Below are positions 4,602 to 59,500 of a DNA stretch of 64,000 nucleotides, piece after piece. The stretch's first letter is position 1. Every line of letters begins with the position of its first letter. The stretch comes from Lytechinus pictus. Its lineage: Eukaryota. The notes under the pieces are model-generated. The model was not told where the DNA came from and did not search any database. It saw only the letters and a list, made by a program, of their open reading frames with translations. The translations under genes were made by a program, and so were the position numbers. The DNA is taken from assembly GCF_037042905.1 (NCBI RefSeq), contig NC_087246.1:12090001-12154000 (forward strand), in the 5' to 3' direction.

Positions 4602-4835
4602 CTAGCTTCCGGACGCGTCTTGAGGGCGGCAACATCATGAGCGGTGCTAGATAAAAAATGTGTTCATTCGCGGATAAAATATGAATCTCACCTCGATGCT
4701 AAATCCCGTTTCAACCGGTCGTCTAGTGCGCGAGATATTTAGCATTGAGGTGAGATTCATGATATTTATCGGCAAATGCAAATTTTTTATCTAGCACCGC
4801 TCATGTTGCCGACCTCAAGACATGTTTATGGCTAG
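4602..4835. mobile_element. Palindromic MITE
   Basis: ~90-100 bp inverted arms (gtcttgagg..catgagcggtgctagataaaaaat..atgaatctcacctc..atgctaaat and its reverse complement) around a short spacer. Confidence 0.75.
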
Positions 4836-16253: not shown

Positions 16254-16369
16254 TATTGTCATATGATCTCATTAAAGAAAGAAATATTTGGAACAAATGG
16301 AGGAGACCTTTCATCACAATGAAATGACTATGCCTGCACTTTGGAAGCCCACAGAACTGCCAACAACTT

Positions 16370-25693: not shown

Positions 25694-28600
25694 CTGTAAT
25701 ACAAAGATAGAAAAGAAAATTAATGTCTCAGCCATTGCCAGATCTGATATATAATGCACACCTAACAGTAATTCAAAAAATGTTGAAAAGCTTTCATTAT
25801 CTCATCAGGTCATCACTCCCATATGCATTCATGAAGCCTGTTTAATGAGTATTAATTTATTGGATCTTTGTGACTTTTGACCTTCTAACTAAGCCTGAGT
25901 CATATCGTTTATTTTGAAAACCGGTGTTCGACAGCTATAATTCGATCGAACATCGATGCATCATTTTTTTTGCTCCGGCCGTCGCGTCAATGCGCTATGC
26001 ACGCACTGACAGTACGGTATGCGCTGGCCGGCCGGGTGAGCGTTGCACAAGCAGATGACAGAGCAAAGTTCGTTTGCATTTTCCATGATCACAAAACAGA
26101 AAAAAGGCCGGGGACCAATGCAGAATTCTTACCAAAATATCTTCAACAATGATATTTGCAGATATAAGTTTAAAATGAAACAATATTAAAGACATGAATC
26201 ACGCAGAGTCAATCCAAATGATTTTCGGTCAACTAGCATACGCAGTCCAGACTCGCACACACCAGCCCCGTACTCCCCTGAAACGACAGGCGTGCTTGCC
26301 AGCGCCAGCAAACAAGTGCGACCAGCAGAGAGTGCTGTTACTTGCCTGAGATTGTGTAGTTGGCAGGGTAGTTGGATCCAAAATGAGCTCCAAATAAATT
26401 GATGGGAATAAATACGTAATTTTCTCTGGATGGTCATTTGAATTGGTATTCAATGCTGATATAACGATTGTGAGGAAAGATTGTGGAATATGAGTTATGA
26501 CGATCGAGATTTAATCCTGATATATGATAATCCATTTTTTATTTTAGACACAAGAGCATGCGATCAAAATAAATACAAATGTTTTGGATCGAGCTCTAAA
26601 TTTATATAAATTGTTATTGGATGTTAAATAATTACGATTTAATAAGATTTTATGGCCATACTAAAAATATTGACGATGTCAGCAAAGTATGTTATGTTCA
26701 TATGGAAGAATTAATAGTATTATTACCCCGGTATACTGACATTATTTTTATTTATTCCATCTCTGGACGTCTCCTCCGAGCTCCGAGAAAAGAAGCAAAA
26801 TGCGCATGCGCGTTCGATGACGTATTTTCCATTCATGAAATCAGAGCCCAAAGTTGGGCACAAACTAGCTTCAAATTGATGGGAAAAAAATATCAAACGC
26901 AATTTTCTCTGTTTTGTCATGTAAAATATTATTATATGGTGATATTACGATCTTGAAAAGAGTTTCTGCATGTTGACAATGTTCGAGAATCAATCCTGAC
27001 GTGATAATAATTTTTTTAGATAAGTGCACTCACTCAAGTCGATCGTCATGTGATGTCCGCCATTGAAAATTGAAACTAAATACAAACGTTTCAAATCAAG
27101 CTCTACATTTGTATTAATGATTATCATATGCAAATTATCGTTAGATAAATAAATCATGTTCTATGGTCATTATATTAATATTGTTCATGAAAGCAAGATT
27201 TATTTACGTTGATCGCGTCAATTTTCCGGCCATTTTCTGGTTTGATTAAAGCACAGCACTGCGCATGCACGATCGATGGTGACTTCCATTCATGAATTCA
27301 TCGAGCATAAATTATCTCGGCACGAGCAGACGAGTAAGACTCGAACTATGATCGAAATAGACTTCAAATTAATGGTGAATATAGGCATCATAAATACACA
27401 ATCGGTTTCATTTTGGGGGCAATATAAATCAAGTAAGTAGTAGTCAAGTTGGACATTACTGTTTATTTTGATGATTGATTGTGTGAACCAAACGAATCGG
27501 CCGGCCAACGTATTTTTTTTTTCTTCGATGCACCGATTTTGCAAATCTGCACCGGCGTTCGATGAAATTGATCGAACACAGATGAAAATCGATTCAACTC
27601 AGGCTTACTTCTAACTCTCAAATCTGATCAGAATTGAAGTTGATTCATCAAATAGTTCTTCAGTTATTACTTATTACAAGAATGAGATTTTGACATCCCC
27701 CCCCCAAAAAAAAAATAATTAGATCATTGCCACTCATGTACACTGACCAGTACATGGACCAAATTTGAAGTTCTAGACTCAGCCATTCTTCAAATTCAAA
27801 ACAAAATAAAATTCTTCATCTATTACAGGTATTAGACAAAACTTATTTTTTAAATCTGACTAGGAAGCAGTATAGCAAACACCTCATCACTTTTCTAACC
27901 AAAATCACTAATATCTAGGTTCCTGTAAAGGAGTCTTATATTTTTCTGTATTTGCTGTTGCATTAGGTACTCAACATGCAAGTTACAGCACAATCAACTG
28001 CTCAGCAATCATTTGCTTCTGCTTTAGGGAACAAGGTGGACATTAAATGGAGACTACTGTTCATGGGGAGACATCAACGCTCTCAACAAGAAAATGAGGT
28101 AATGCAACAGAACATACCAATCCCCTTCCCAAATTTAATTTCACTGAGTATGTTTGAATATGAATGCCAATACCTTTTGACAAATATATAAATAAAAAGA
28201 ATATGGAGCCTGTTATTCTCGGTAAGAATTTATTCGCATGAATTATGCTGATGTTATGTTATCTGAATCTGATAGCATGGCAGACTCACGCCTCAACGAA
28301 TCCTAATTACCGGTATATAGCACTAAGTTTCACTGACTTGAGCAAATCCAGAAATGATTTTACAAAACTCATATTTACCTGCTTAGCGCGAATCATGTCA
28401 TATTTCTCCACAATCTGTACCGAAGCTTCGCTTGTGACCATGTTCCAGAGACCATCACTGCCTAAGATTAGAAACCGTTCTGAATGTGGATCAATAACCC
28501 TGTGAGATATGTCAGGCTCTGGAGATACAATGTACTGGCCGTTTTTGAAGTTATAGCTCCATAGATCGCCTGAAGTAAGATAAAGGTAGATTTGAAATGG

Positions 28601-31600: not shown

Positions 31601-34600
31601 CAACAGTTTTTTTACTTAAAGGAGAATGAAACCCTTGAAACCAGCTGAATCCATATCAAAGAGAAAAATCAAAGAAACATATTGTTGAAAGTTTGAGGAA
31701 GATTGAATGAATAATAAGAAAGTTATGAGCATTTGAATATTGAGATCACTAATGCCATGTAGATCCTCCCATTGGCAATGCGACCAAGATCTGTGATGTC
31801 ACACACGTACAACTCCCTCATTACTTTAGTACTTATTTCACTTATATTCTCACTTTTACAGAGTCTATCACAAGGTGAGGTGTTCTCTTTATGAGAGGAC
31901 AAGTACAGAGGTTTCACAACATTATATCATTGATGAATCGTTTGTCATATGATTAGAATGAGCAAAAAGAAATGTTTTGGGGTATATTTTCAGTGTCCAA
32001 AAGGGGAGAGTTGTTCATCTGTGACATCATAGATCTTGGTCGCATCGCCAATGGGAGGATCTCCATAGCATTAGTGATCACGACATTCAAATGCTCATAA
32101 CTCTTCTATTGCTAGTCCTATTTTACTCAAACTTTTGTTGATCTTATTCTTTGATTTTTCTGCTTTCACAAAAGCTAACTTGCTCCAAGAGTTTCATTCT
32201 CCTTTAAATATTTTTTCGCTTGTTAAATGTTTTGGAGTTGACCTTTTTAGCTTTTCTAGGTGAATGTTGACTCATTTTCTTCATCAAAAGTGATAAAGAA
32301 AAGCTAGATTTGTTTCAGTATCAATGCCTAAAAAGAGCACTTCAAATATTCTGGCCAAACAATATTGGCATGGAGGAGCTCAATAATCTCACTCAACTTA
32401 AGATGAGTCAGGAAGTCAAAAGACGTTGGAATTGGATAGGTCATGTCCTCAGAAAGCAAGATGACCATTGACCAGCATTGTTACACTGCTCTAACATGGA
32501 ATCCAGGAGGAAAACGTAAAAGGGGTAGACCAAAATCAACATGGAGGAGAACTGCAGAGGAGAGAAATACCTATGGATGGAAGAGTTGGAATGAGGCCAG
32601 GGGTTGTGCTAGAGACCGCCAACAATGGAAAGAAAGCGTGGAGGCCTCATGTGCCACAGGGAACGAATGAGGATAGTAATAGTAGTTGACTCATTTCATC
32701 TCCATGGATGATGGTTGACCATGTTTTATTGGTCAATGAGAACCAAATTGTTAAAAATGGAATGTAAATTCCCTACAAACAAGTTGAACTTGATCTACAG
32801 TATGCAATATGGCCTTGGGGGCAATTATTAATCATGAAGGGGGACTTGTCTGTGTACTTAAAAATTGAACTTCAGATTAAACATAAAATTTCTTTTAAAT
32901 TCCACAAAATAATCAGTTGGTATTCTTATCAGTATCAATGTGCTGAAAATCTCATAAAATTTTGAATATAATTTCTTTAGAAAAACCTAGACCAGTCATT
33001 TTTGGATTGAAGTATTGAACCCAATAAATGGTGCCCCATGACATGTCTGGCACCCAGTCACTTTACACAAGATTCAGGGATTTTGATGATAAAGGCTACA
33101 TTTTGAATTTGAGGCCGTTTATAGGAAATGCCTGAAATCAAATACTTTTCCATCATTTTGAGTCAGATTTTTAAATGAATATTGAAGGTGGAAAGTTTAT
33201 GGTTGTTGCAGGTCTTCTTTTATTAGAATCACAGTTTACGTACATGCACAGACAAGGGACACTGCCCAGACTTGGGTCTTGGTCAAGTTGGGGCACCTGA
33301 AGAGTCACAGAAGTGGGTATTTTTAACATTTATCTCATTTATTGTTTATGTTGGCAGCTGGGCACTGGTCACCCACCCCTCATAGAAAAAGTGGGAGAAA
33401 AATTCCAACTGCATTAGCCATTACCATGATTTGCACTGTAGCATTTGATGGTTACATCGTCACCTCAGCGCCCGATTACCAACACCAAGCCATTGCTTGG
33501 TCCTTGGTCGACTAATAAAGCCAGATACTGTGTAACAGTTCAACTAACAGACTAATGTCAAAGACTTTTGCATTTGGGCCTTTTTCGAATTAACATTAAT
33601 CATTAAAGGAGAATGAAACTCTTGGAGCAAGTTAGCTTTTGTGAAAGCAGAAAAATCAAAGAATAAGATCAACAAAACTTTGAGTAAAATAGGACTAGCA
33701 ATAAAAGAGTTATGAGCATTTGAATGTCGAGATCACTAATGCTATGGAGATCCTCCCATTGGCAATGCGACCAAGATCTGTGATGTCACACACGTACAAC
33801 TCTCCCATTCGGACACTGAAAATATACCCCAAAACATCTCTTTTTGCTCATTCTAATCATATGACAAACGATTCATCAATGATATAATGTTGTGAAACCT
33901 CTGTACTTGTCATCTCATAAAGAAAACACCTAACCTTGTGATAGACTCTATAAAAGTGAGAATATAAGTGAAATAAGTACTAAAGTAATGAGGGAGTTGT
34001 ACGTGTGTGATATCACAGATCTTGGTCGCATTGCCGATGGGAGGATCTACATGGCACTAGTGATCTCAATATTCAAATGCTCATAACTTTCTTATTATTC
34101 ATTCAATCTTCCTCAAACTTTCAACAATATGTTTCTTTGATTTTTCTCTTTAATATGGATTCAGCTAGTTTCAAGGGTTTCATTCTCCTTTAACTTCCCT
34201 GGTTTCGATAAAAAGAGAAAAACAAACAAGCATAACACTGAAAATTTTATCAAAATGATCAGATGTAAAATAAGTTAGGTGTATGACATTTTTAACTTCG
34301 GATGCTTAATTTCCCAAAAGTCATGTGCATGGTGGTGAGTCCAAACTTCATGTGTGTCCATACTCCGTGAATGGTCATTATCTCAAAAACTATTCAATAT
34401 CTTTAAAATCTTGACATCAACATGAAGTGACCTAAAATTACTGTCTAGGGTAAAGTTTCTTTAGAATAGTTTCAGTATATTCATGAAAATCTTGAAAAAA
34501 GATAAGCAAATTTGTCACCGTTAGCATCCGTTCTGAAAAAAAATCTGAACTTCTCAACTTAAGCATCACAACAATATCATAATTTAACGAGCAGATATAA

Positions 34601-35894
34601 AGAATTTGAGTAAAAAATGTACAGCTGACTGCTGTAGATCTCTGCCACCTATCGTAGGAAGAAGACGGTAGGATGGGGGTCGGGTGTCAGGACACTTTAT
34701 ATTTTTGAAGCCTTCTTTTTTGTCTATGGATTAGATCTAGATCGAGATCTACACTAACAAATTATGAATTCAATCGTAATCATCTTTTATTTGGTTTGCC
34801 TAAAATTTTGTACTAAGTCAAAAGATTGATGAAACTTCACTTGTAAATTTTTCCAAATGACTTAAAATTGATTGTCCGGACACGCAACTGGGTAGATCTA
34901 ACTTTATAGATCTACTGACCAATTATACTAGAAATTGGCCAATAGAATTTTGTCGTCCCTCTCGATATAAATATATCATTTTTTGAGCTTGAGTTTTTGT
35001 TTAAATCCGCAAAATTAGACTATATCTAGGCCTAACGTTAGACTTTTCAAGAACAGCTTTCCAATTCCAGCACACCGCACATTCATCAATCAGAATAGAA
35101 TTTTGACATCGCAATATCGGCAAAACCCCTAGCTCCTTTAAGCCTAATAGTAATAAATTAGTAATAGGCCCTACTAATACATCACATTTTTTGTCAATAA
35201 TTCTATAGTTTACGGAAATTACGCATAGATCTACCTTCTTGCCATCAATTTAGTAGCCATTAATATTAGAATTTGTTTTGGATAAAGTGTGAATATTTTT
35301 TTAATGAATTTTTAAGGCTTTAGTTTAAAGTTTAAGTTTAGCCTCATGAATATTTCTTAGATGTCCGCGAAGTTTGGACACCCCATCACATGATGTTATT
35401 TTTCAGCAATGTCATGATCTCATTCTAACTGTAACTTTGTAAGCTTGTTTAGTTGTTTGAATGACTTTACTTAGTTTGAGCATTTATTCAAATCAACATT
35501 TTTCTGGGGTGGACTTAATGTTGTTTTCTAAGATCCACGATAACTTACGTCTCTCCTTCCACATTCCCTCTTGAGTAACACGAAATGCCTCCTTAATCGC
35601 GTACATAACCTTTCCCGGTTCGCGGGAAAAGAACCCATCTTGTTCCTTGATATTTTTCCACAGATGATCACGGGCATACACTGAGGCCTCTTTCCCTCCA
35701 TGTCCATCGAACACAGCGAAGCATGCATAGTCGGCGTCTTGTTCTCTGTCAAAAACAATACAAATCATGTCTTCCATGTATTTTCTTCCTCCCTGTGTTG
35801 AGTCGCTAGATACCCTTAATCCTATTACACGTTTTCTTTTTGGATTTTTCTTCATAGGACTGGAAACAGTCCGATATTGTTCCACACTTTCCAT
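24683..35894 (-). CDS. PPM1D: Protein phosphatase 1D / Wip1 (PP2C family), 4 coding exons, 643 aa
   Basis: Exons 35894-35549, 31189-30806, 28569-28379 and 25693-24683 total 1932 nt in frame. PP2C motifs present: GGRKYMED, FAVFDGHGG, STAGTT, AHVGDS, DHKP, LAVARSLGD, ILGSDGLW, RADNISV. PPM1D-type segments WPKTxxGxPST and RVVWxRP...IPFLAVAR are also present. Confidence 0.94.
25890..27607. mobile_element. Young hAT-like non-autonomous element (1.7 kb) in PPM1D intron 3
   Basis: TIR taagcctgagt / actcaggctta; perfect 8-bp TSD cttctaac at 25882-25889 and 27608-27615; subterminal TCGA(T) motifs; CpG-rich compared with flanks. Confidence 0.85.
28379..28569 (-). CDS. PPM1D: PPM1D exon 3
   Basis: cttcag acceptor, gtaaat donor; DLWSYNF...VSPEPD...ILGSDGLWNM. 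Confidence 0.94.
28818..29754. mobile_element. Kolobok-like non-autonomous element (TTAA TSD)
   Basis: TTAA|ggacgttccacagtta...taactgtggaatgtcc|TTAA. Confidence 0.85.
29759..30244. mobile_element. Kolobok-like MITE (TTAA TSD), abutting the previous element
   Basis: TTAA|agggaagttcccc...ggggaccttccct|TTAA with imperfect long inverted arms. Confidence 0.7.
30806..31189 (-). CDS. PPM1D: PPM1D exon 2
   Basis: tctccag acceptor, gtaatt donor; HVGDS, DHKP and the B-loop/flap region. Confidence 0.94.
31620..32203 (+). mobile_element. Kolobok-like MITE, copy A
   Basis: TTAA|aggagaatgaaac...gtttcattctcct|TTAA; ~180-bp imperfect arms. Confidence 0.88.
32278..32684 (+). mobile_element. 5'-truncated RTE-clade LINE
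   Basis: Frameshifted KLDLFQYQCLKR..IFWP..RWNWIGHVLR..ALTWNPGGKRKRGRPKSTWRRT..ARDRQQWK; short (TAG)-like tail; 12-bp TSD gttgactcattt at 32266-32277 and 32685-32696. Confidence 0.88.
33607..34189 (-). mobile_element. Kolobok-like MITE, copy B (inverted near-identical copy of A)
   Basis: TTAA flanks; reverse complement of 31620-32203 over its full length. Confidence 0.88.
35549..35894 (-). CDS. PPM1D: PPM1D exon 1
   Basis: Start aaacATGg, motifs RKYMED and DGHGG, donor gtaagt. Confidence 0.92.
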
Positions 35895-35968
35895 GTTTTC
35901 GGTCTTCCCGGCGCGCCGTTTCCTATCGAAAATGTTCTTTGTAACGCGCCAATATTCACACACATCGG

Positions 35969-36077: not shown

Positions 36078-36744
36078 AATGAATACATTGATCAAAGGTT
36101 ATCGATATCCGAACGTAAACAAAGACGGCTGATCAAAACATGTTTTCAAGATTCAAGATTCTTGAAAGATTCTTTTATTGGTCAATGTACGCATACAAAG
36201 AAATTTGGTTTCCAATGGCTTATCAATAAAGATGAAAAGTACAATACATCGTAACAATATTGAAATAATTCACATGAACGATCAATATACATGTAAATTA
36301 TTAATAACTGTCTGCAATCACTGTATTACCCCTAAACTCCTAAATGCATGTGGATAATGATGAGGCATAGGTATGATGCCATAATTATCATCCCCTAATC
36401 CTATTACGGTATATGTGGAACATGTTCATCATTATATCAGTCACTGTAAAAGTAGAATTTATGCATAATATAACACTTGTACAAGACAATGATGGTGAAA
36501 GTAGGTCAGAGAGAGAAGGTGAGGAAAACAGGGGAAGAGAAATAAGATGAAGAAGAAAAGATCAAAGAGAGAAGAAATAGAGGAGGAATAAGAAGAAAGA
36601 AGATGATTTGCTGATACTATAATAGTTTTTCATTCCCTTTTACTATATATTCTAAGTTACAGCGTCATGAATGAGTATTGTGGGTAAGGACGATACCACA
36701 AAACATATAGGACCTATTTTCTCCTTTTCTCCCTCTTCTTCTTC

Positions 36745-39623: not shown

Positions 39624-40729
39624 TTCAGCCCTCGCGCTTGGCGCTCGCATTTTTTTTTGGTTTCTTCATCATTTTCCTACATATCAAATTTTGCTTAAAA
39701 TGTTCCCCTTTTTGGTCAATAATAATGTGAAAACAATTGCTACTTGGCTTCGCGTTAATGTTTTTTTAATGAGATACGTGGCATGATTACAAAAATTGCT
39801 TGAAATCCGGCTTGAAAGGGCCGTTTTCAGGTCGAATATCAGTTGGCGTTTCGTACTTGCATTATTTGATTATTGTGATACGTTTGCTCTCGTTATAAGT
39901 TACTACAATAGCCCTTAAAAATGTCTCTTATTCAGCCCAACATATAAACTTCTTGTTTTATAATTATACTCTTTTTGTACCCCCGGCTTATGCCGTGACC
40001 CACTCACTACGCAACTGCCACCCCCCCTCCATCGCCCCCTTCCAGGTGTGATGCCATGCATGTCTGCGCCAATGGGAGGGTTAGGTATGCCTATAGGGCA
40101 ACTCCATTTACTACAAAATAACATTACTGTTTATATACCCCCTGCAAAAATCAAAGTGTATACCTTTGAGAATTGAAGTATTCATGAAAACCCACATCGG
40201 GGAATTCCCAATATTTGGGGGCTCAATCTCTCCGAGAAAGAAAAGGCGACTTTTAATCGCGAACTAAGAGCTTGAAGTTTCGAGGGTTTTTTTTCTCGAA
40301 ATGTTACACGTCCTTCCCCCCCCCCCCCCCGCAAAAGAATATGCGTATAAGGCCATGGAAGCTACCAAAAATAAACTCGTAGGGCCTAGGGCTAGGCTAT
40401 AGAGTTTCAATGGTGATTCAATGCCTTACTGTTTGGAGAAATAATGAACTTCACGTGATACCACTCATATAAAATAGAAAATGCAGGATTGGAAGAATTC
40501 CTCTGTATTTGGGGGATTGTAAGAAGCGCAAGTCCGTTCCCCATCCGAAAACGTCTGTAGGCCTAGCCTATTATGCTTGGCACAGCTTTGTCCCGGAGCA
40601 TTGTCCACTCAGTTATTTTGATGTGCAGCAAATGTGTAAGAGCAGTATTTTTTTTCTTTTAAGATCCATTTTGGACTCAATGTAAGAGCATAGTGTCCAT
40701 CCACAAATTGGTGCTCTAAGAAAGTTTGA

Positions 40730-41500
40730 TCGCCGACGCCGTATGGTAATGCTTTTATTATATTTTTACCCACATGGCTATGAATTTGATTTCGCGCATT
40801 TTGTGGAAGTCATTGCTTTTGCACATGCGCATTACTGATCAACGAGCTGAGCATGCGCAGTTGTGCGCCACCATCGGGCTAGCTCTCGATATGTAAATTT
40901 CTGTCCGGCAAAGTTACTGTGTGGGCTGTATTTCTTTTCGAGGATTTCTTCTCATTGAAGCTGCTTCTTTTATTGGAATTTTCTTATTCGATAGCTGTAT
41001 ATAATATATATGCATGTGCGTGATTTAGAGAAAATTCATGCTTTCGATTCTTCAGAATCAGAGTTTCCATCAACCTTCATCACTCGACCCGAACATGTAA
41101 TTCGGTGCACCTCCACAGTGCGATAACTACGGCAGCGGCGACTTGTGGGGATGTGTTACCGTGCATTACCACACGGGGACGGAGATTTTGTTGGAAATAA
41201 GTGATTCGTTTGCATCTTGTTTCTCGAAATTCCTTTCAAGTAACTGACACGCAGACCAAATCACAAGATGGCTACGACTGTCCAGTATGACCTGGATACG
41301 TCTGGAGGCCTCATGATGGTAAGTGAAATTCAATTTTTGCCTTTGAAAAACTTGTTTGTGACTCGAATTCGATTTGACAGATGTTCTCGTTTACTTATGC
41401 ACAGCCACGCAACGCGTGCGAACAACAAAATCTGCTTGCTGTGCCATCCATTGCACACAGAACTCGTTATTTTTTCTTTCAAAATGGCGACGCAACGTAC
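40730..41500 (+). promoter_or_regulatory. CpG-rich promoter/5' region of PHF12
   Basis: Local CpG enrichment; NRF1/P3A2-like CATGCGCA motifs near 40824 and 40853; YY1-like CAAGATGGC at the ATG and AAAATGGCG at ~41481. Confidence 0.5.
41268..41318 (+). CDS. PHF12: PHF12 coding exon 1
   Basis: caagATGg start; [17 protein letters not shown]; gtaagt donor. Confidence 0.93.
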
Positions 41501-44500
41501 CACCAGGAAAGGGAGCTCATTGCTGTGTGTCTTGCACATTCTATCTTCATCACATTTAACTTGTTAATAACTGTTTCCATGTCATATTTACAGCAAATTC
41601 AGGCTTTGGTTGCTCCTCCACAAAGTGATGAGCCTCCAAGAAAGTACAGAAGAACAGAACCAAGAAGAACAGGAAGAGCAACCAATAGAGATTCCTGTGA
41701 TAGCTGCACAGAGGGAGGAGATCTTATTTGCTGTGACCGTTGCCCTGCATCTTTTCACCTCCAGTGCTGGTAAATTTTATTTCTTAAGTCAGACATAGAC
41801 AAAAAATTAAAAAGCCCCTGAGAATTTCTAAAATAGAATTAGGCCTAGATCTAATGTTACTCTAGTAGATTAGAATTAGATTCTAGACATTAATAATACT
41901 AATACTCTAGAACAACATTACTCATTAGATTAGTCTACTTGCAATTGATTTTCAACCAAATTTGTCTGAACTGAAGATTTGAAAAGTCTTTTGATTTTTT
42001 TTTTGCTCCAGTCTTGGTCAGAGTAGAATCTACAGATCAATTGAAAGTAAAAAAATTTTGCTCATTATTCTGTTGATCAGGGTGAAACTAAGGACTGGTA
42101 TTTGAATGAAATCAAATACTGATGCTACAACTATATACTTGCCTTCTGCTATATAAATTTCTATTGACATAATGACAATGTAGAATTGGATTTCAATATA
42201 ATTTAAAGGTAAGTCCATGAAATAAAACTTTAATATTTGTGGCATTCTAAATTATAATGCTCAATTCTCAATAAAAGGGAATTCTGAGCAAAAGAGATCT
42301 TGGTTATACGTTATGGCACAAGAACATGCGTTGTGTCCTCTGAAATATTTCTTTGATTTGTACATTCAACAGAACACTTGATATTTTTTCTCTATTTTGG
42401 TAATTTCTGTACTGGTTAAAATTTGGAATCTACCAGTTGAAAAAACTAAGAACATACAAGTACAATTAGAGTACACCAAATGGGTATTGATTTCAAGCTA
42501 ACATTTGAAAATCTTGATACAGGAGTGATAATGAATAGACTTCCGTTCTCAATCCCAATATGGTGTTACAGTAAAGGAAAACTACTTATGCTGAAAGTAT
42601 CATAGTACTGTACACATGTACTTTGATAAAGATAAAATACTTGAAAAAATGTTTGAATAGATGATTTATACCCATTGAAAAGAGTCATATTAATCATGCA
42701 TGGCAATGTATTTCAACCAATTTCTATTATGCTTATCTAGTGTCATGGATATTTTAATCAAATTAGTTCTATTGAATTCACTTCCTTTTTTTTTTACAGA
42801 ATCCGATTTGTAGTCAAAATAAGTGATATGTAAGAAGTGGGTGGGAAAGAGGAAATAAGTGGAAAGAAAATCTTGTCTTTTTCTTTCTTGGCCTATAATT
42901 CTCTAATCCATTCAAGTGATTCAATACAGACATGCATTGTTAACATGTATGTCACATGACGTATGGATGGCTCAGTTAACATACTTGTTTGAAATCAACC
43001 AAATTTTTCATAATCCATTCAGTCTTTATCTTTTTCAACAATTTTTTTCCAGCTAAACTTAAATTGTTCATAGACCTAGATCTGCTAATAGGACTATAAC
43101 CTCTCCCTCCCTTTCCACTCCCTCCAAAAATCTTGAAGGTGGGATAGAATTGGTATTGGCTTAAAATGACATAGAAATGTTATGCATGTTCAGTAAAAAA
43201 ATGAATAAATTGATAGAAATGCAAAAGAACATTAAATGCATGAATTACTCTTGATATGGTATCTTCATGTTTTACTTTTAATAATGATTTAAGTAGGACT
43301 GAAAATCGCACTGAAATTCACAGTTACATTTCAGATCATGCCCATAGGCTTAGGATTAGGATAGGATGTTCAATATCACATGCACATTTGCATCTAAGCA
43401 TGACCTTTAGGCCTATATTTCACACTGAAATACACCCCCAAAACTAGGATCAGCAACTTTATTACACTTGAATTCAGATGCACTGTGTGTCTTACTTTGA
43501 CTTGACAAAGTAGACTTAATAGGAGCTAATGGAGTGTCCGTATACACATCTACATGTAAGCTGCAGGTCTATAATTGGAAAGTTATGCATACACTCAAAC
43601 TAGTATATAGTGTACATGTGAGCACTAAATGTATGTTACATGTGGGCAATTCCACATACATGTATGGGCTTTGCACTTCAGACAGGTGAATGCACCACAC
43701 TTTGAATTAACAGTATTCAAACAGAACTTTTTGCTGTTCACCTATAAATGTACATGCAACTGAATATTAAATGTGTCTGATGAACTCAACAAGAAATGTT
43801 TGAATTCTGTAAATTTGAAAAGGTGAACTGAATGTCATTCCCTCAAGCTGGAATTTTTCCTTTTGCTTTTTACATACATGTACTAGTGCCATGTACAGTA
43901 TATAAATACATGTACAGTATCTTGCTGTTTAGAGCTGTATTTAAGTGAATTTTTTAATTAGTGATTTCACCTCTTTTCATAGGCTACATGTACCGGAAGC
44001 TGGAGAGTTGCTTTCCTACTGACATTAAAATGTTTGTGATGCTACATGTACATGTAAGGCTTGCAAAGTTTTGATGATAAAGCACTATGAAATCGTGCTG
44101 TTAGGGACCATTGTAAATCAAGTCTCCATCATCGCCAGATTGGCAGGGGTTTGTTTGTAAACTTCATGAATTTGTGAACTATCAGCAGTGCAGTATGTAG
44201 CAACAATAACGGTCCAACTTGTTGACGCTGTGACTGTGAAACGAAAGGACATGTACCTCAGGATCAGTTTAGTGGACTTGTCTAAGCTAGCAACTGAACT
44301 TCGTCTTTAAAAACCCATCGAGCTATTATGTTTCATGTTACATAGATCCATGTGAGCATCTACTTAAAAAGGCTACAACTTTTTGATGGGGTATGCTTAA
44401 AAGCAGGAAAACACTCTAATGACGTTGTGGTTGCTGAAGTACACATCTATGTATATTACAAAATTTGATATTTGGATATATCTGTCAAATTTGTGTGTAA

Positions 44501-47500
44501 ATATACTATGTACAGTATGACAGAAATTTTGATACCAATTGGGTTGCTGTATATTTTTTAAATATACATATATTATATTAAAGAAGGCCCCCACATTTAT
44601 GATTAACCTTCCATTCTTATGGTGACTGGTGCTAAATTGCCAAAGACTCATGGAGTCTAGATGGAGATTATTATTTTCATTTTTGAAATGCAGGATTGTC
44701 AATGATATCTGAACAAGTATAAAACTCAAATGTGAGTTGAGTCAAGCTCGTAAATCTGGCACTTTATTTTTATTTAGGCCTTCATGCAGAGGGAAGGTAA
44801 ATCGCACTAGGCTCAGTTGTGGACTCATCAGCCTAGGTACTAAAAGATAGTGCAATGTGATAATATTTACAACGCTTCATTTCTTTAATATTTCTTAAAA
44901 TTTATTTTTCCCTTTGATGTCTCCACCTGAGCTGTGAAGCTACATGTAATACTGATACATGTACATGTAGTGCATATGCATGTGAGAAATGAGCAAAGGC
45001 ATTTTGATTTTAGACACTGCTTTCGTTCAGTCTTGTCTGCCAAGTTTCAGCATTGTAGAGCTAGCCACCTGTCTGTATAGATTATACCACTGGGCCATTT
45101 CATGGCGAGTGGGTACATGATGTAGTGAAAGACATGCGGTTTGACTTTATATTAAGTTAAGAATTGTCAGGAGTCTTCAATTCAAGACCTAATGTTAAAG
45201 AAAATGTCTGTCCTAGGAGCTACATGTATATTTGGATTCTGCTTTGTATGAGTGAGATTTCCTTTGAAGTTTGTCTGTGTCATACAGATATTTTTTCTTT
45301 TGTAGCAATAATGTTTGATGTTAGTTTATGACATTGTAGGTACATGTAATGTAGATTAATATGCTTTTTAACTGAAAGATACAGACTGCTAACAATCTCC
45401 AATGTCAATTAAAATGTGCATCTATGACCATGGCCTTTGATGGCTTGTGATAGATTTGAGCATTGGGAATAACAATTTGTATTGAACCCAATTGAAATGT
45501 TTGAGGGTTATTTTGCAATTGACAAGGATTTTCTTTTATATCACCGGTATAAGGGTATAGTGAGTTACTTGTTTTCAAATGCAGAAAAGAATCATAACCT
45601 TTTTCATAAGGATCACTATGACTATCCATACACTGTGCCTACATGTACATGGAGCTCAGCATACTTCATGCATTGTAATTTTATTTTGATGTTCATTTCT
45701 TGACCTATCACTCATGGAACATTCTGCAATCCACAGGCATGCACTTATGTACACAACAGTAAATTTAGGCCTAAAGTGTACATGGATTGCTTCCCTGTGA
45801 TGAAATGTAAAGAGTGAACTCAAGTCCAATTATGTAGGGGAAATGGGTGTCAGCCTGGCTGACTAGTATTTTATCATTCCCTCCGAAAGTGGACAAACTG
45901 GGGTACATGTAGTTGGATTGATCAATGGGTAATGCTATGTATGTACGGTCAAAATTGAGCATTATTAAGAATCTTATCTCAAAATCAGTTGCTCTAGCTG
46001 CATTTACCCAAGAGTTACAGCAGGTACAGCATGAATCGTTATTAATATGCATCCATCTAAGATTGTTTTCAATTTATAATCAAACAAATTGTTTGTTAAT
46101 CGGCCCACTTTATATGTATTGCATAGGGTTTCATGAGTTCACAATTTTTTGAAATGGCCAGATCCTCCAGACAAGATAATGTTTGTTAGCTTGGTTGAAA
46201 GTTGTTGACATGAAGAAAAGAGAAGGCAAAATACATGTAATTGAGTACATGTACATACCTGTAGAAGTCTCATTTGATAAAGATAAATCCTTTGTATTTC
46301 ACCATTATGCATGTAAGTATGTAGTGTGTAATTTCTCTTTCAACAACTGAAAATAAATGACCAATGCACAGTGAAAATTTTATCAGAATTAACATGGTAC
46401 ATGTAGAAATAATACATGTATCACTTTAGCATGGTTATGGTATGAATTGTGTCTGACAAATTTTACACAGAAATTGAGCTCAGTTTGCCTGAAACTGTAC
46501 TAGCAGACACCTGCACACATGCTAGAAATGTTTGTACATGAATTATACAGGCCAAGAGACTAAACATTTACCAGGGAGGGATTCATTCTCAAACTGAGCA
46601 TCAAGTATACCGATTCATTGACAGCACTACTGTCACCACATAATGTCCTATGTGTTGAATTGACTCTGTCTTTAGAGTAGATTATCTTACTGTGAATTTG
46701 GGGTAAATCCAGGGCTCTATAGGGGGGGGGGGGGTTACAGTGTAATATTGGCACCATAAATTTTCAATATCTTTAATATATAAGGGCCCTTTTAACTTTT
46801 TTTTCTTTGGTGTTGTGTTTTTATGTTCCCCAGGTAGAAAATGTGATGGATTTTATATCCATACATTTATTTAAAGCATCCATCATTTTTAAAGTTCATT
46901 ACATCTGGCTTCTTCACTTGTATAAATATCTAGCCTTTAAGACGTACTTTTAGGCATACTCAGTAGTAATGTGCTTATACCAGTTTATGATATCATACGT
47001 AGATAAATGCAAACAAAACATGACAGTCATTAATTAAACATTAGGTCTATCATTACATGTAATTTGGTATTTGATGACTGAGCAATGCAGATAATCATAT
47101 ATGATGAGGCTTGTGAATCAATTGAAATATAGGTGAATGTTGTTGTTTCTTGTTCAATGATAGCAAATAGTATGGTGGGTACATGTACATGTAGTTTCAA
47201 AGATATTAAAGGCTCAAGTTAACGTTACAGACATGTAATTAAAAAAAAACAAAGGAGAGATCAAATATGTACATAGATGCCTTTCTATCAATCTAAAAAC
47301 TCTGAAACCAACAAAAAATCTAAAGAAATGCTTTTGATACCTTATAATAAAAGATTTTTTGTGTAATTTATATCGTACCGATAATAATAGAACACATAAG
47401 TGTATGTGATGAAATTAAGATGGTGTTTCCGGTCACTTTATGTTTCACTTTTTTTGAAGCACTAAATGATTATTTTCGGACACAATTTTTTTCTGAGCTT

Positions 47501-50500
47501 CATTGTTGTAACATATCACAGTCAGACACAGGTGAAAAGTGGGACCTTTAAATACATAAAAAATTGATGCATTCCACCTGTTCGGGGGGGGGGGGGTGAT
47601 CCAAAGGACCTGTTTTATCCTTCCCTATTTTGCTGGTAAGTACTCTTCACTATTGAAATCAACAGTAGACCTACATGTACATGTATTCCCTTATGTACAT
47701 ATATAGGCAATAAAGATTAAAATATAAAGTTTAGCCATGTTTAACAGGCATTAGCATGTATTTACAACAGTGTTATGTACAGTATATCAGCTTGAGTGAT
47801 AAAAGTGCATACTAAAATTTGAATGAGTGTCATGCAATATGTCTAGTTGTGTGCCACAACTTTGAATCTCACTGCAAGATAATACCCAGCTTACCAGCGA
47901 TGTACATCATGCTGAACAACTTGGAGGCTCGTCATCATACTGGATGTATGAATGGGTAGTCAGCAACATTTCCCTTGGAGAAGGGATGTCTATCGGTCTT
48001 AATCAACAATCTATTCCTCCTGCCAGCTCAAAATTCTTTTTATATTAGAAATGGAAAAGGATTATTTTGACTGTAGTAATTGAGGCTTTAAACCGTCAGT
48101 GACTCAGCGAACGATATAAGTTGCACTGGGAAAAGGATCTACATGTATGTGGCTTTGAGAGGAAGTTCTGCTGTTAGTAGACTGACTCCAGTCTTCTTTT
48201 GCTACTTGAAGCACCAGAGTTTTAAAGAATTGATGGGTATGTGGTTGACAGGGGAGAGGGGAGTTTTTCCCCCTTCATCTTCTTCTTCAGGGCTAGGATA
48301 GAAAGTGCAGATCCATTGATGAATTCAATGAGTTTGAGGATAATTACTTGTCTGTTTTTAATGATTTTCTTATTCAAACTTGTTATGTTTTCTCTGAGGC
48401 TACCATACTTCTGTAATTGTATTTGAATCTTTTGAATTGTTGGTTATTTTACCAGAGCCCAGGGTGCTACATAACTTTTAGAAGCACTTGCCCTGTTGGG
48501 CAAGTAAATTTTTAAATAGTTGGAGTATACTTGCCCAAAGAAATCCTTGAAAGAAAAAAGTGTTACCTCTTCAAAAGAAAGTATTGCGGTTTTATAAACC
48601 ATTGACCTTTTTTTCTCTTTTGACATGAACTGATGTACCCTGTTATTGCATTTCTTTTTCCATAGTGATTTTAATACCCGTCATGATCAAATTTAGGGTC
48701 AATAAATCGTATCGACCCTTAGTTTGGTCATTCTACTCTGAGAATTTTGCTTGCCCAATTCAGGCAAGTGGTGTTGGTCTTCACTTCAAAACACTTGCCT
48801 GACTCTTAACTTTTACTTGCCCCGGGCAATCAGGCAAGTGCTTATGTAGCACCCTGCATAGCCAAATGATTATTAATATAACAATTATTTCCCCAAAAGC
48901 AAGGAAAGGAGGAAAAATTTGAAAGTAATTAATCTGTGTTTCTGGAATGAAAAATGTAGTGTAGGGTGGCATGATTTTGTATTGCATTCAGATCAGGGGA
49001 GCGTTTCATGAAAGGACTTGTCAACGTTTTATCCGACAAGTCCCATTTTATCCGACAGTTACCATAGTAAAAGTACCTCTCAGCCAATCAACATCAGAGA
49101 AAGATGTCAGATCTGACAACTTGTCGGATGAAAATGTTATTGAAACACTCCGCAGAACTCAAAAAAATCTTGTCAGTTTTTGTCTCACCTGCATATCAGA
49201 GTAAGACTAGGTGCCGCATTCCGACGGCGGCAGCATCAATATAATTAAAAAGTATATGGACCTAGTTCATGAAACTTGGACACAAGGGTGATCAAATATT
49301 ACTGAACATCTTACCCGAGTTTCAAGTCACATGACTAAGGTCAAAGGTCATTTAGGGTCAAAGAACTTTGGCTAAGTTGGGGTATTTGCTGAATTATCAT
49401 CATAACTTTGAAAGTTTATGGATCTGATTCATAAAACTTGGACCTAAGAGTAATCAAGTATCACTAAACATCTTGTGCGAGTTTCAGGTCACATGACCAA
49501 GGTCAAAGGTCATTAAGGTCAATGAACTTTGGCCATGTTGGAGGTAATTATTAAATTGCTGTCATAACTTTCAAAGTTTATGGATATAGTTTATGAATTG
49601 TGGACATAGGGGTAATCAAGTATCACTGACAAGTCTTAGGTCACATGGTCAAGGTCAAATGTCATTTAGGGTCAATGAATGTAGTATTGTGTCAACATCA
49701 AAACTTAACCGAAGGTTAAGTTTATTGAATGACAGCATAACTTAGAAAGTATATGGACCTAGTTCATGAAACCTGGACATAAGGTTAATCAAGTATTACT
49801 AAATATCCTGTCCGAGTTTCAGGTCACATGACTAAAGTCAAAGGTCATTTAGGGTCAATAAACTAAGACCATGTTGGGGGAGTCAAAATCTATAAGGTTA
49901 AGTTTTTGAAATGTCATCATAACTTAAAAAGTATATGAACTTAGTTCATGAAACCTGGACATATGGGTAATCAAGTATTACTGAACATCCTGTGCGAGTT
50001 TCAGGTCATATGACCAGGTCAAAGGTCATTTAGGGTCAATGAACTTTGGCCAAGTTGGGGGTATTTGTTGAATTACCATCATAACTTTGAAAGTTTATGG
50101 ATCTGATTCATAGCACTTACACGTAAGAGTAATCAAGTATCATTATACATTCTGTGCAAGTTTCAGGTAAACATGACCAAGGTCAAAGGCCATTTAAGGT
50201 CAATGAACTTTGGCCATGTTGGAGGTAATTATTAAATTGCTGTCATAACTTTCAAAGTTTATGGATATAGTTTATGAATTGTGGACATAAGGGATAATCA
50301 AGTATCACTGACAAGTCTTAGGTCACATGATCAAGGTCAAATGCCATTTAGGGTCAATGATCCTAGTATTGTATCATTATATGAACTATGTTTTTTGTGA
50401 ATAATTATTTATAGTAGTTTTCAAAGTCAGCATAGCTGCTATATTGAATCGTGTAATGCAAGTGAGACTGCCAGAGTCGCTCCACTTGTCTCTGATTTGA

Positions 50501-53500: not shown

Positions 53501-56500
53501 TCAGCTCAGTCTTAACTTTAGCTCAATGTTAACTGTAACCTTAATTCTAATCTTGTTCTTACCCTACTCCTAATGCTTGCTTCTGGTACCAAGTATACTT
53601 GTCAATGTGGTGACTGCCATAATAGCTACTTAAAGGTTTTCTCAGGTACATCATTGAGTTGACTTCATTGCTTTCTTCCTTTTACCATGAAGCCATTGAA
53701 CACTGAGGTCACACTCTCTGACACTATCAAGTCTATTGAGAAGGCGCAACGCTCTGAGAGAGAGAAGAAGCAGAAGGAGGTTGCTGCTGCTGCCAAGGAG
53801 AAGGAGAGAGCTGCCTCCACCTCCCTCCGGCTGAATGATCGACTGAACGACAGACTCATGAGAGAAGGAAGGGCATGTTTGCGGCTGGCTCAGATCCAGG
53901 CCTACAAGTAAGCCTTCATTACCATAATTCACAAATGAGTTTTAGCCTACGAAACCCTCTCCTTGTTTTATCCGAGCATAGTGTGAATTGCCCATGTGCG
54001 CACATACATGAAATATCTGATTGGATCATATGCAGTGTGTGAGTATGCATACAAAACTGAAGTTGGGGTATGAACCTCCTTTGTGAATTTTGGTCAGAAG
54101 AGAATTGGATGAAAATTTGTATGTCCTAGTTTCATTTGTAAATGGTCATATCCATTAATTTCCTTATTCCTTGAAGTAAGGCATCCACAAAATCGCCCTT
54201 TTGTTGAATTTAATTATAAGATTGGGTAAAGGATAAATGAATAAGATTAAAAATTATAATTCAATATCACAAAGCCAACAGTCCTGTATGGAATTCTGTA
54301 ATGCAGGCAAGACTCCCAGAGGCGTTGCTTTTTTTAATATATTTATTTTCATTATTACATTTTTCTATTCCATAACTCTTTTTAAAAAAGATCAAATTAA
54401 CCGGTAATTATTTTCAGTCCGTAATTTGTAGTGAGAACATATTTCTTTATGTGAAAGATGGATAATTTGAGGCTGCATTGTATTTCCAGTAAATCCAGTC
54501 AACTTAATGGCAACCCCCAGTGCTCCAATCTATTTTGAATTATCATTTTGTCAAAAGGTAGAATTCATTCTCTGATATATGATTTACTCTTTCTCCAGGG
54601 AGGCACAGATAGAGGCTGGGATAATACCAAAGGAAATGCCAGAAGAGGGAGATACCAATCGGACGGAGGGAACAGAAGAAGAAAAGATGGATGTTGACAA
54701 GGCAAAGGATTTAGTGGAGGTGGCTGAAGAAAAGAAAGACAAGGAGGAAGAGGAGGTTTATGTCAGGTTTGAGAATCCTCTAAGCTACCTCATCAAAGCT
54801 GTAGCCATTCAGAATCCGAAGCAGTTCTCTCTCCCTCCAGAGATGATGCAACATGCACCCCTACCAGGTAATTTGGGATGGCCCCTCTGTCATTTCATAT
54901 TGTACAATACATTGAATGTGAGATTGTCTAAAGATTAATAAAAAACAAAACAGTATTCAAATCAAAACCTAGTTTCCTTTTTTAGAGGGAGGGGGGGGGG
55001 GAATAAAAAAAGCCCATCTATAGCTACTGATAATGTCTGAAAATTCAGGAGCCCTTTAAAAAATCCATTATTTGTCCTTATTCCTAGGCTTTACAAGTTG
55101 CAAGTTCCTGAGAGAAATACTGTAATTAATGTGCAAATTTTCTTTTGTAAAACTATATCACATACAGTGTATTCTCAGCTCTCCTTGTCATGATTTTATT
55201 TCTTTTTATGCTCAGGGACAACTAAGAAGAAGAAAAAAGAGGAACTATCCAAGAACTACAAGAAGCCTCATGAGCTAGATAATATGATGATCCCCCTACC
55301 TGCTAAAGTCTGCTTCACATGTAACAAGTAAGTTCTACTTGGTAAAAGCAGCAAAAATTGTATTGGTCTTTTTTTTAATTTACAGTGAGTGGTATAATTA
55401 TGACGGATGTGGCCTATTCTTAATTTCATGTCAATTTTAGCTTTTCATATGCCATCTGTTTAAACATCTGGATTTAAATTGATTTAATTTTGAGATCTGA
55501 ACATAAATCTTACCATAAAATCTTTCTTTTATTTAATATCCCTACCAGAGGCAATATATGCAAATGGTAACTGAAATGTCTTGCTTTACTTTTTCTTTTC
55601 TACTCTTTTTTCTATTCTCTCTCTCTTACACCCTCACTCTCTTGGCGCACACACTCTTTCTGTCTTTCTCTCTGTATCTCTTCACTACTCTGCCTGTCTC
55701 TGTCATTGTTAACTCTACACGATATTCTTAATATTTCATCTTAGACTTCCAAAGTAGTTTTGTTCTTAACAGAATCAAGTTTTGTGTGCAATGCAAAGTT
55801 GGCATTTATTCAGATAAAGACTTGCTGGTTTACTGCTTTGGGAGAGTTACATGTAAATGAAAACAAACAAATCATTTCCTGAATACCAGGTCATGGAAGT
55901 AGGGTTGTTCAAAGCAGTTCACACTCATGCAAAATTACGGTTCAGATGATGGTCATGATGAGTGTAAACATTGTATGCTTTGAAAAATAACCAATGTTGG
56001 CTCTTAGATACCTTATAACCGAAACATCATTTTGTCTCATCAATGAAGTGCTCACAAACCAACACTTAAAACTTTTTTTTTTTGGTACTTACATGTATTC
56101 TAATCTTGCTTGTGTTTTATGTAATGTGTGCTAGAGATCATGCCATGGCAGTTTACTTCTCACATGTACATTCTATGTACTTGATTCAAAATTCAAAATT
56201 AGTGTTTGTTTAAATGTACCTTGGTAATTTTGGGGAAAATGCTGATGAGCCGACCCTGGCTTGGCTTCTTTGGAAATAAATTTTCTACATGTATCATGAA
56301 AACATAAAAGAATTTATATTGTAATATTTGTGTAAGAATTCATAAACTGAGTATTTGTGTTAGTTTGAATAAAAGTAAGCTGTGGTTTGCCCAAAGCAGG
56401 AAGGATGTACATGCTTGTCTAACTTTTTCAGTGTCATGCAAGAAAGTCCCTATTACTATGTACTATCAAAATCAGTTGAGACCTTCTAATGGGAACCGTA

Positions 56501-59500
56501 CCACTTGTCAGATGAAATAACAACCTGACTACTCTATTACTGGAAAAGATTTACATGTACTTTTACTGACTTTGTTGAAGCTTGTTGTGAATATGTATGA
56601 TTAGATTGCCATTTTATGCCATCCTTGTACCAAAAAAAAAATGATTAAGGCACATGAAACCTAGCATTCCATAGAAGTATGCTCTACATTTTCACTTTAA
56701 TCTGGACCTACATCTGGATTCACTCATCAGAATACCACCTTTATTTGTTTCATTAACTCATAATCCTATTGAAATGACAACTCTGTATATTCTTTATTTA
56801 ATGATTTTGTTGTTGGATGCCTGTAAGAGTGTATGAAAACGTTTATTTCCTATGACTGTATGATATTTCTACATCAATTTCTTTCAAGATGACATTGATA
56901 CATTCATTTAGTGCAGAATTTTTCACTCAATCATTTTGTCTATTATTTATTTGTACTTCAGAACATGTCGTGTAGCACCCCTTCTCCAATGTGACTACTG
57001 CCCTCTGCTGTTCCATAGAGACTGCCTGAATCCCCCTATTACATCCTTACCTACTGGCAGGTGGATGTGCCCCAATCATCCAGAATATGCATTGGTAAGT
57101 AATAGAGATGAGATACATTGAGGGGTTCCTGGTAGGGTGTTTGTGTAGTGCTGATTTTGACACCAGTCACAGCACTGTCAATAACATGAAGCTGGTGCCT
57201 GGAAGTGACTGCATGAGGTGTTAAGCTGTGATTAGTATGATTTTTTTTGTTAACCCAAATCCACCGTGGAGCTAGGTTAGGCAAACTGATTCATAATCTT
57301 GACACCAACGTATAACGTGAAGCCCTTTCACTGAATCACAATGTGTTGGGCTATCAATAATGTGATTAGTATCATTTTGATATCCACATTCGATGTTGAA
57401 GTTAGGTTAGGCATTTTTTTAATTGCTCTCAATATCAACACTATACCAAATTTGAAATCATCCATTGTGTTGAGTGTTGATTTTTACGCTTAGCTGAGCG
57501 TTGGGAGAAACTACAATGAACAGTTTAAGTAGTTATTATAAGGTTTCAAAAAGAAGTTTGGACATGCCTTTGATGATGCTTTAATATTGTATCTATCATG
57601 CAAAAATATGTTATTCTTGTTCTTAGTGTAGTGTTAAATAAATTATATTTCTAGTATTGAATTTGATGAATATTAGTCATTCATGACGTCTCTATGGAAG
57701 AAAGCAATGATAATAATTGTTAATTTACTTATCACAACTTGCATTCACATAGATTTTTGTAGTTGCTTCACAAAACATTCCTGGTCCGTATAATCCTTGT
57801 TTTTGCTTTGAATACCATGATAATTTCGGAAATTGTGTCAATGTTATATCTGTTAAAGAATTAACGGTATGATTTTAAAAACCTATGATCTTACAGCCAG
57901 CATTCTACATGTAGATTGCAGGTGATACATACAGTGGTTCTAAAAAGTTAGTGAACCCCTCCAGAAAATAAACATATTTTAAAGTGTTCAAATTCTGCCA
58001 TCTTTTAGATATTTAATTGTGAAGTCAGGTGATGTAGTTTGTTTCTCTGGGCTCGCCGAATGTTGTAGCATTGTTGTCTACGTTCAACACTCAGCACAAA
58101 GGAATGCATTTTCTGGTGGGGTTCACTAACTTTTTAGCACCACTGTACATTATACAAAATGTTTAATACACTGCTTAACATTGTTATAATCCCTCTGTTT
58201 ATTGTTTACCCTGTCAACATTATGCAAATATAAAATTGCATGTGAAGGAAAACAAGAAATTGATAGTCTTAATGACCTTGACCTTACAGCCAGAATTCCA
58301 GAATGGCGGTCACACAGAACGAGTGAAGATCTTCAACCAATTCCAGGGCAAGGTAGACCAGCAAGCTGTCAAACTCCAGTTCATCAACAAAATCCATAGA
58401 TCTGGACCTCCATGGAAAGAGAAATGTAAATGGCGCAAGACAATCAAGGTGAGGCATCACTGCCACTCGTATTGATATTTAGATACCATCCTGGACTAGA
58501 GATCCCCAAATACATTAAATGGGAGAAGGGTGTGGCAGTCTACAGTGACATGAATTACACTTATCTTCATAATAGACATGGGCATGGCAAGCTAAATTAT
58601 ATTCAGATCATCCTCAAACTTCAATTAAGCATGGCATGACAAAGGTTAGCTAATTAAGTTTAGTTATCAGAATAGTTTTCAGACATATCGCCTTGATCTT
58701 CATCAACTAATGCTTTTTATATGAGAGATTACCTTTGGTAACAACTAAAACTCTTCCATTTCCTACCAGGTACCTGGAGCCATCAAGAATCAATATGCAC
58801 TGCCTCCTCCATTACTCCCCCTCTGCCATGAGCGCCCCCCTCCTATGATAGGCCCAGTGGATGAAGTCAAGAAACCTGGTCCTCTAACTCAGCAGGAAGA
58901 ACAAGAAGAGGTCTGTATTTGTCTTCTTTCTTTTAAAATCACTCATTTTGAAATAGTAAGTTGTTTAGTAACTTGGTAGTTTTCTTTTCTTTCAAGAGGG
59001 AATGGGTGGCCCATAACACAAAGGGTTTTGTGATGGATTGCAAATCTGAAAGAACAGTTCTTGTTCCTGCTCAGTATTTCTAACAAAACAATAAGTAAGA
59101 GCCAATAAGAATGGTTCTTTCAATCAGTCAAACCTGCATTGGCTACCACCTGTATAAAAGGACCACTTGTTTATAAAGACCATAAATTTTGTTTCCTTTA
59201 ATTTTCCTTTTAAAACATGTATTGAAGGAACCTGTGTCCAAAGAGCATGTGCTCATAAAGACCACTTTTCTTGTCTCTTTTGGCATCATTAAAAATGTTG
59301 ATCTGACTTGGACCCCATTTACACATGGGCTGGTTTCATGGAGTCGGCCTCACGCTGGCGTCATGCCGTTTTAAAAAAAAAACGAAGTGTGTTTAGTTTA
59401 CATATAGCAGAAAAGGGGGCTTGACAACCTCCCGTTTACACATGGTAAGGCGGCCAGCAGCAGGGCCACTTGAAAGAGCGCAATACCGAGGTCAATGCAA

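Follow-up and report, generated by a model that had tools for sequence, protein, structure and literature searches.

What has put so many short palindromes framed by TA around and inside a gene assigned to PHF12 in the sea urchin Lytechinus pictus, and why do their inner letters seem to change along the gene? The DNA in question is a stretch of 64,000 nucleotides (contig NC_087246.1, positions 12,090,001 to 12,154,000; hereafter the window), AT-rich with ~35% G+C and with no N. Two types of string are of interest: a G type (GG and GA), which includes TAGGCCTA, TAGATCTA and TAGACCTA, and a CA type, TACATGTA. A first-pass annotation of the sequence had proposed that chains of such palindromes bracket the PHF12 promoter and form a positional code, written by insertions targeted to TA sites, that records germline chromatin states. 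The TAGGCCTA-type strings are probably excision footprints of cut-and-paste transposons that target TA, and the positional split between the types is real in this window. We read the split as showing the places where the families integrated or where their scars survived, helped by a greater age of the G type, and not as a code. Coordinates are collected in Table 1.

The strings are much commoner than composition predicts. Against expectations from an order-2 Markov model of the 64-kb window, TACATGTA occurs 47 times (2.9 expected), TAGATCTA 8 times (0.85), TAGGCCTA 6 times (0.42) and the 9-mers of the TAGGNCCTA class 4 times (0.39), while the four TAG[AG][CT]CTA forms sum to 19 (2.4). Only three of the 16 palindromes of the form TA-XY-X'Y'-TA are enriched, 9- to 16-fold, with the other 13 at expectation, and all three are within the top 50 over-represented 8-mers of the window, among which TACATGTA is second. 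The corresponding 7-mers are weak (TAGCCTA 6 against 2.0, TAGGCTA 2 against 1.9, TACAGTA 12 against 5.5 and TACTGTA 3 against 5.6). An artefact of the GC-richer promoter is ruled out by regional Markov expectations of 0.05-0.12; in the promoter zone TAGGCCTA is seen 3 times (0.06 expected) and TAGATCTA 5 times (0.12). Generation of TACATGTA by CpG decay in methylated DNA is likewise ruled out by its count in the hot intron, PHF12 intron 2, when set against the regional expectation (Table 1).

The flanks of the sites are unrelated to one another, which also rules out that the strings are element termini or belong to a dispersed repeat. The best identity between G-type flanks is 52%, the 95th percentile of a random-TA-site control being 54%, and self-BLAST of the site flanks within the window gave one weak match and no usable paralogue. 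The copies are therefore not pieces of one repeat and represent independent events in unique DNA. An excess of TTCATGAA (20 copies, 5.9 expected) was put down in part to a dispersed repeat and set aside. A repeat around aagtTTCATGAActaggtccata, at 19568, 19731, 39486, 49266, 49763 and 49945, accounts for about 6-7 of those 20 copies; it marks the 49-50 kb part of PHF12 intron 2 as repeat-derived, and no scars lie there.

Many copies share a TA with a neighbour. The strings singled out by the first-pass annotation, namely the three chains around the promoter, two further copies of TAGGCCTA (43408 and 45766) and the mixed chain at 47666, are exact in letters and position. Because PHF12 exon 1 begins at 40953 according to RNA contigs, two of the three chains fall upstream of it (Table 1) and the third at about +887, so that they do bracket the promoter. 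Whether such chains exceed random expectation had been left as a test, and they do, with 13 TA-sharing pairs against 2.5 expected (Poisson p 2e-6; by our own arithmetic the expectation is ~4 if the hot intron is modelled separately). The two cores differ in 8 of the 13 pairs, 3 of which join a C-type to a G-type unit, and slippage of one unit, an explanation that the annotation had itself raised, thus cannot account for the chains as a class; it is insufficient, for instance, for the 41840 chain, whose two cores differ. Slippage is a possible origin of the other 5 pairs, all of them TACATGTACATGTA, and of two further chains. These are 34732-34751, which reads TAGATC-TAGATC-GAGATC-TA, and 40380-40399, whose first unit is of the TAGGNCCTA class and whose three units resemble each other. 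Homotypic chains like TACATGTACATGTA look like two-unit repeats of a hexanucleotide microsatellite, (TACATG)n; unlike such a microsatellite, however, the units here are mostly single, and the mixed chains join different cores. That the whole phenomenon is chance composition with microsatellite-like slippage, the 8-mers being k-mer noise and the chains tandem 6-7 bp units, is hardly credible and already largely refuted. The TACATGTACATGTA pairs and the similar repeated units of the two chains just named are what it would lead one to expect, and 6 copies against 0.42 fail correction over all 8-mers when no shape is specified beforehand, but the excess is confined to TA-framed palindromes of three cores, one of which reaches the sixteen-fold figure given above, mixed cores prevail among the pairs, and the copies mostly stand alone in unique DNA. 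A poly-C run (40316-40331) precedes the first chain by ~50 bp; runs of at least 8 G (or C) number 60 across the window against 0.6 expected.

Tc1/mariner transposons insert at TA and duplicate it, and on their exit staggered cuts leave the outermost 2-3 letters of the element on each flank before end-joining seals the gap. With Tc1/Tc3-type elements the cut at the 5′ ends falls two letters into the element, and each flank keeps two transposon letters beside TA; the full TACATGTA form is known from the Tc1/Tc3 literature. By these steps an element 5′-CA...TG-3′ would leave TA-CA-TG-TA, one with 5′-GG...CC-3′ would leave TA-GG-CC-TA, and one with 5′-GA...TC-3′ would leave TA-GA-TC-TA, the 7- and 9-letter forms being repair variants. 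As every scar adds a TA, chains are to be expected under the footprint model: if an element later enters and leaves at either TA of a scar, two scars would share that TA. Small insertions at TA, as transposon footprints, are what survives of the proposed targeted TA-site insertions, and their mechanism was already known.

For the CA type this origin is well supported, with agreement between three independent lines: resident elements, target bias and the turnover of a chain in a related species. Its core is identical to the outermost letters of two resident TA-flanked elements with CAGTG ends (15433-16255 and 57930-58147), the former a candidate for the source type of the scars. The flanks of TACATGTA have A at -3 in 28 of 47 copies (60%, background 35%; p 4e-4) and T at +3 in 24 of 47 (51%, background 36%; p 0.02). 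These are the outer positions of ATATATAT, the target preference of Tc1-like elements (PMC7913693). The G type may be taken for footprints by analogy, as it has in common with the CA type the TA frame, the series of 7, 8 and 9 letters, unique flanks and participation in joint chains; its GG and GA scars would derive from one or two TA-targeting families with GG or GA termini. The mini-palindrome beginning at the final TA of the 41840 chain is possibly a remnant element, though a weak one, and was rejected as a source element, there being no second copy within the window.

Comparison with known systems helps to specify the cut. The usual somatic Tc1 footprint is TATGTA or TACATA (PMC12632400), and the canonical footprint of Sleeping Beauty (SB) is TAC(A/T)GTA, that is TA-cag/ctg-TA from 3-nt overhangs (PMC5224488). 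The latter is the form of the TACAGTA/TACTGTA series here and, by analogy, of TAGGCTA/TAGCCTA. Unlike with SB, 8-mers dominate here and 7-mers are weak or at expectation, which points to 2-nt overhangs. The likeness is to the footprints that Tc1 and Tc3 leave in Caenorhabditis elegans after 2-nt staggered cuts, with the TA duplication and the outermost transposon letters. The present scars differ in being germline-fixed and very dense, reaching 5 per kb and totalling 47 in 64 kb, and in including the extra cores GG-CC and GA-TC, for which no source element was found in the window. Two other mechanisms were considered. PIF/Harbinger elements with GG...CC termini were rejected: they would, by our own reasoning, duplicate TAA or TTA and so give TTAGGCCTTA or TAAGGCCTAA, not TAGGCCTA. 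Palindromic additions of the hairpin type (hAT/Transib) are unlikely, as they should palindromise any flank, yet only three TA-framed cores are enriched.

The positions of the two types can now be compared. The promoter zone (34-37 and 38-42 kb) has per kb 0.43 copies of TAGGCCTA, 0.71 of TAGATCTA and 0.14 of TACATGTA; for PHF12 intron 2 between 43.5 and 48.2 kb the figures are 0.21, 0 and 5.1, for the remaining PHF12 body 0, 0 and 0.70, and for the PPM1D body 0, 0 and 0.43. In circular-shift tests, which keep the clustering intact, 13 of the 21 G-type sites lie no more than 1.3 kb from the PPM1D or PHF12 start, a zone that is 8% of the window (p 0.0045), and the median distance to the nearer of these two starts is 1.07 kb for the G type (p 0.003) and 6.7 kb for the CA type. 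The CA type is situated in low-CpG DNA (shift p 0.012), and the classes differ in the ratio of observed to expected CpG (CpG o/e; shift p 0.02, or p 1e-4 with sites treated as independent). In invertebrates promoters are usually unmethylated and gene bodies methylated. The pattern here, with CpG o/e of 0.65-1.2 near the PPM1D and PHF12 starts and 0.1-0.35 in gene bodies, fits that scheme, and the surroundings of the CA type are presumably germline-methylated. The G-type cluster in PPM1D intron 1 has TAGATCTA at 34732, 34893, 34907 and 35226, TAGGCCTA at 35027 and TAGGCCCTA at 35165, and further G-type units occur near the probable start of an RFC5-like gene (3420, 3644, 4290, 4598 and 5246).

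The split is not a clean one. A change of class along the gene, as the first-pass annotation had it, stands in so far as the G type keeps near gene starts and the CA type to the CpG-poor body. The promoter strings were also said to give way to TACATGTA downstream; its first copy there is indeed at 43551, but TAGGCCTA-type strings at 43408, 45766 and 51195 are inside the TACATGTA zone. The classes are thus intermixed at these three places and in the mixed chains at 43980 and 47666, yet distance from the start separates them (p 0.003-0.005). In all, 3 of 10 GG-type sites are in the gene body, and another, at 11279, is also off the split. A GA type peculiar to the 5′ border of PHF12 comes down to one 8-mer (41846) and two 9-mers (41877 and 42024).

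Clustering within about 1 kb of gene starts would also suit palindromic protein-binding sites (TAGRYCTA) selected near promoters, and palindromes do fit dimeric DNA-binding proteins. This is nevertheless a very unlikely account of the G-type strings, since they have the TA-framed architecture of the CA-type scars, vary in unit length (7, 8 and 9) and share TA with CA-type units, have copies in gene bodies, and in one chain differ between species by the loss of a T; a literature search found no paper on TAGGCCTA as a regulatory motif in animals.

That chain is the one at 40558, which in a related species (runs X2 and X3, ~90% identity to the window) differs only in lacking the T at 40564, and which consequently predates the split of the two species. 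At 45934-45948, X3 reads TACATGTACTGTA while the window and X2 read TATGTATGTA; this chain is polymorphic within the related species, so that turnover of CA-type chains continues. When the excess of one-mismatch derivatives is divided by the number of perfect copies, the result is 0.38 for CA, 0.8 for GA and 1.5 for GG. From this ratio and the shared 40558 chain the G types look older than CA, though the estimate of their age (d about 0.17) is very noisy. Divergence from the related species is 2.6% of letters for the promoter block 40415-41782 and 6-9% for the intron. Just beyond the block, the 182 bp of 41783-41964, which contain the 41840 chain and a tract rich in TAGA/TCTA, are replaced in the related species by 195 unalignable letters.

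Age and selection only, with no targeting of chromatin, are a possible but doubtful explanation of the split. Older G scars would survive in slowly changing promoter-proximal DNA, and young CA scars would be kept from promoters by selection, as the derivative ratios, the shared chain and the slow promoter block might suggest. By our own arithmetic, however, which carries a large uncertainty, differential survival at that age and a threefold slower rate gives only ~2.5-fold, against a contrast that is at least tenfold, and the G-type cluster at 34.7-35.2 kb is in an intron with no obvious constraint. Targeting of different parts of genes by different families has a precedent. ZB integrates near active transcription starts, enhancers and open chromatin more than SB does, and both use TA in an AT-rich palindrome (PMC7913693). 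That bias is modest and concerns fresh integrations in human cells, whereas the contrast here is at least tenfold and is seen in ancient scars after excision, repair, drift and selection. In its strongest form the idea would be that two or three TA-targeting families had sharply different germline targeting, with GG/GA-ended elements going to unmethylated promoter-proximal DNA and CAGTG-ended Tc1-like elements to methylated, transcribed bodies, and that their scars are a fossil map of germline chromatin domains; in that form it is unlikely. The claim of a code that records chromatin states is not supported; integration bias, family age and selection are each a sufficient alternative and require no recording function.

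Several observations weigh against the footprints and the split as we read them. An inverted-repeat search within the window found no TA-flanked element with GG or GA termini, and the G-type flanks (n=19) have no ANNTANNT bias, with no signal at -3 and T at +3 in 53%. For TACATGTA only -3 and +3 of the Tc1 target motif are seen, -1 being G/C-rich and not A. Among window paralogues and related-species contigs (12 of 150 indels covered) no pair of an empty TA and a filled site was found for any G-type site, and there was no clean pair of TA and TAGGCCTA. Slippage of a unit of 6-7 bp may have produced the 40380 and 34732 chains. As to position, the G type's location in high-CpG DNA has a shift p of 0.15 and the CpG difference between the classes has p 0.11 once sites less than 500 bp apart are collapsed, neither of which is significant, and the positional result depends on two promoters, or perhaps three, of a single window.

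Table 1. Palindromes, chains, elements and genes, numbered from the first letter of the window
Feature	Position	Strand	Remarks
Chain TA-GGGCC-TA-GGGC-TA-GGC-TA = TAGGGCCTAGGGCTAGGCTA	40380-40399		~573 bp 5′ of PHF12 exon 1
Chain TA-GGCC-TA-GCC-TA = TAGGCCTAGCCTA	40558-40570		~395 bp 5′ of PHF12 exon 1
Mixed chain TA-GGCC-TA-GATC-TA = TAGGCCTAGATCTA	41840-41853		71 bp into PHF12 intron 2
Single TAGGCCTA	43408-43415		PHF12 intron 2; local CpG o/e 0.10
Single TAGGCCTA	45766-45773		Within TACATGTA-rich stretch
TACATGTA-rich stretch	43551-48147		PHF12 intron 2; 24 copies, 5.1/kb (regional expectation 0.9); CpG o/e 0.10-0.35
Mixed chain TAGGCTACATGTA	43980-43992		G-type 7-mer adjoining CA-type 8-mer
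Mixed chain TA-GACC-TA-CATG-TA-CATG-TA = TAGACCTACATGTACATGTA	47666-47685		
Second promoter-proximal G-type cluster	34732-35233		PPM1D intron 1; CpG o/e 0.74-0.88
TAGGNCCTA	36708-36716		Upstream of PPM1D exon 1
Mini-palindrome, 69 bp, TA-flanked	41852-41920		Starts on last TA of 41840 chain; inverted repeat I1, 27-nt arms, 78% complementary
TA-flanked element, CAGTGCGTCCCA termini, long inverted arms	15433-16255		Candidate source type of CA-type scars
TA-flanked 214-bp element, CAGTGGT termini	57930-58147		
PHF12 exon 1	40953-41317	+	RNA contigs of runs X11, X12 (cover 40953-41318)
PHF12 exon 2	41593-41769	+	Start of putative PHD finger; RNA contig
Open reading frame with PPM1D exon 1	35493-35963	-	Head-to-head with PHF12
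PPM1D last exon, inside open reading frame	24683-25759	-	Protein match to sea urchin PPM1D-like proteins
RFC5-like gene	~5.4 to 9.7 kb	+	Start probably near 4.6 kb

For the 5′ part of PHF12 the gene frame comes from runs X11 and X12, RNA of the same species as the window with 0 mismatches, whose contigs give the splice joint 41317 to 41593 with GT..AG ends. Exon 3 begins near 51963, at the loose end of an RNA contig, and intron 2 is therefore ~10 kb long. Assignment to PHF12 is a sequence-based one, from a Pfam match to PHF12_MRG_bd at 54579-54935 (E 5e-13); the PHD-finger match in the open reading frame with exon 2 (E 6e-4, 20.2 bits) is under the Pfam cut-off of 24. The X11 and X12 contigs also run on from exon 2 through 1.4 kb of intron 2 (41740-43155) with no mismatches, so that either the intron is retained or the transcript has an alternative 3′ end. 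The starts of PPM1D and the RFC5-like gene are approximate positions. For the last exon of PPM1D the best protein matches are a transcript-derived protein (67% identity) and a PPM1D-like protein of Diadema antillarum (55%), and searches with proteins of the window for orthologous loci gave matches only from distant urchins (Diadema, 55-71% identity) and from other deuterostomes. For two open reading frames of the window there was no identical protein on record. The RFC5-like start is probably near 4.6 kb, to judge from promoter-like motifs and a CpG peak: 4577-4800 has GCCATCTTG and CTTCCGG motifs and 15 CpG per 200 bp, ~750 bp 5′ of the first recognisable RFC5-like exon (VEKYRP, 5377). This segment, surrounded by G-type units, is probably a third promoter. 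The same segment has a hairpin-like inverted repeat, ATGAATCTCACCTCGATGCTAAAT and its complement, that may be a small element.

Other features of the window are of interest in their own right. A 2.6-kb structure in a PPM1D intron (31617-34192), whose inverted arms of ~570 bp are nearly identical, is probably a transposon with long terminal inverted repeats. The 10-letter palindrome TATAATTATA is present at 38293, 38549, 39959 and 61595 (4 copies, 0.26 expected), three times in the PPM1D-PHF12 intergenic region. On the minus strand at 10249-10839 is an open reading frame of 196 amino acids made up of units of ~45 amino acids; the adjoining open reading frame, 9936-10286, has the same unit, and there is no Pfam match.

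Excision footprints are normally studied singly and in the laboratory. The first-pass annotation knew of no description of its pattern, and a literature search on TACATGTA, TAGGCCTA and sea urchin footprints found none of such scar saturation or of a positional split. As the footprint mechanism is textbook knowledge, the lack of a description concerns only the genome-wide density and the split. Here scars can be counted, by the dozen per 64 kb and in at least two letter classes, and a genome could be mined for the history of its cut-and-paste transposition, vanished elements included. The scars are also 5-7 bp indels that bring new TA sites near promoters, and in so polymorphic an animal they are a source of regulatory variation that has gone uncounted so far. 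If the split holds genome-wide, it would show that TA-targeting families can differ strongly, and in opposite directions, in the chromatin they prefer in a natural germline, and the scars would serve as a proxy, read from sequence alone, for ancient germline chromatin domains.

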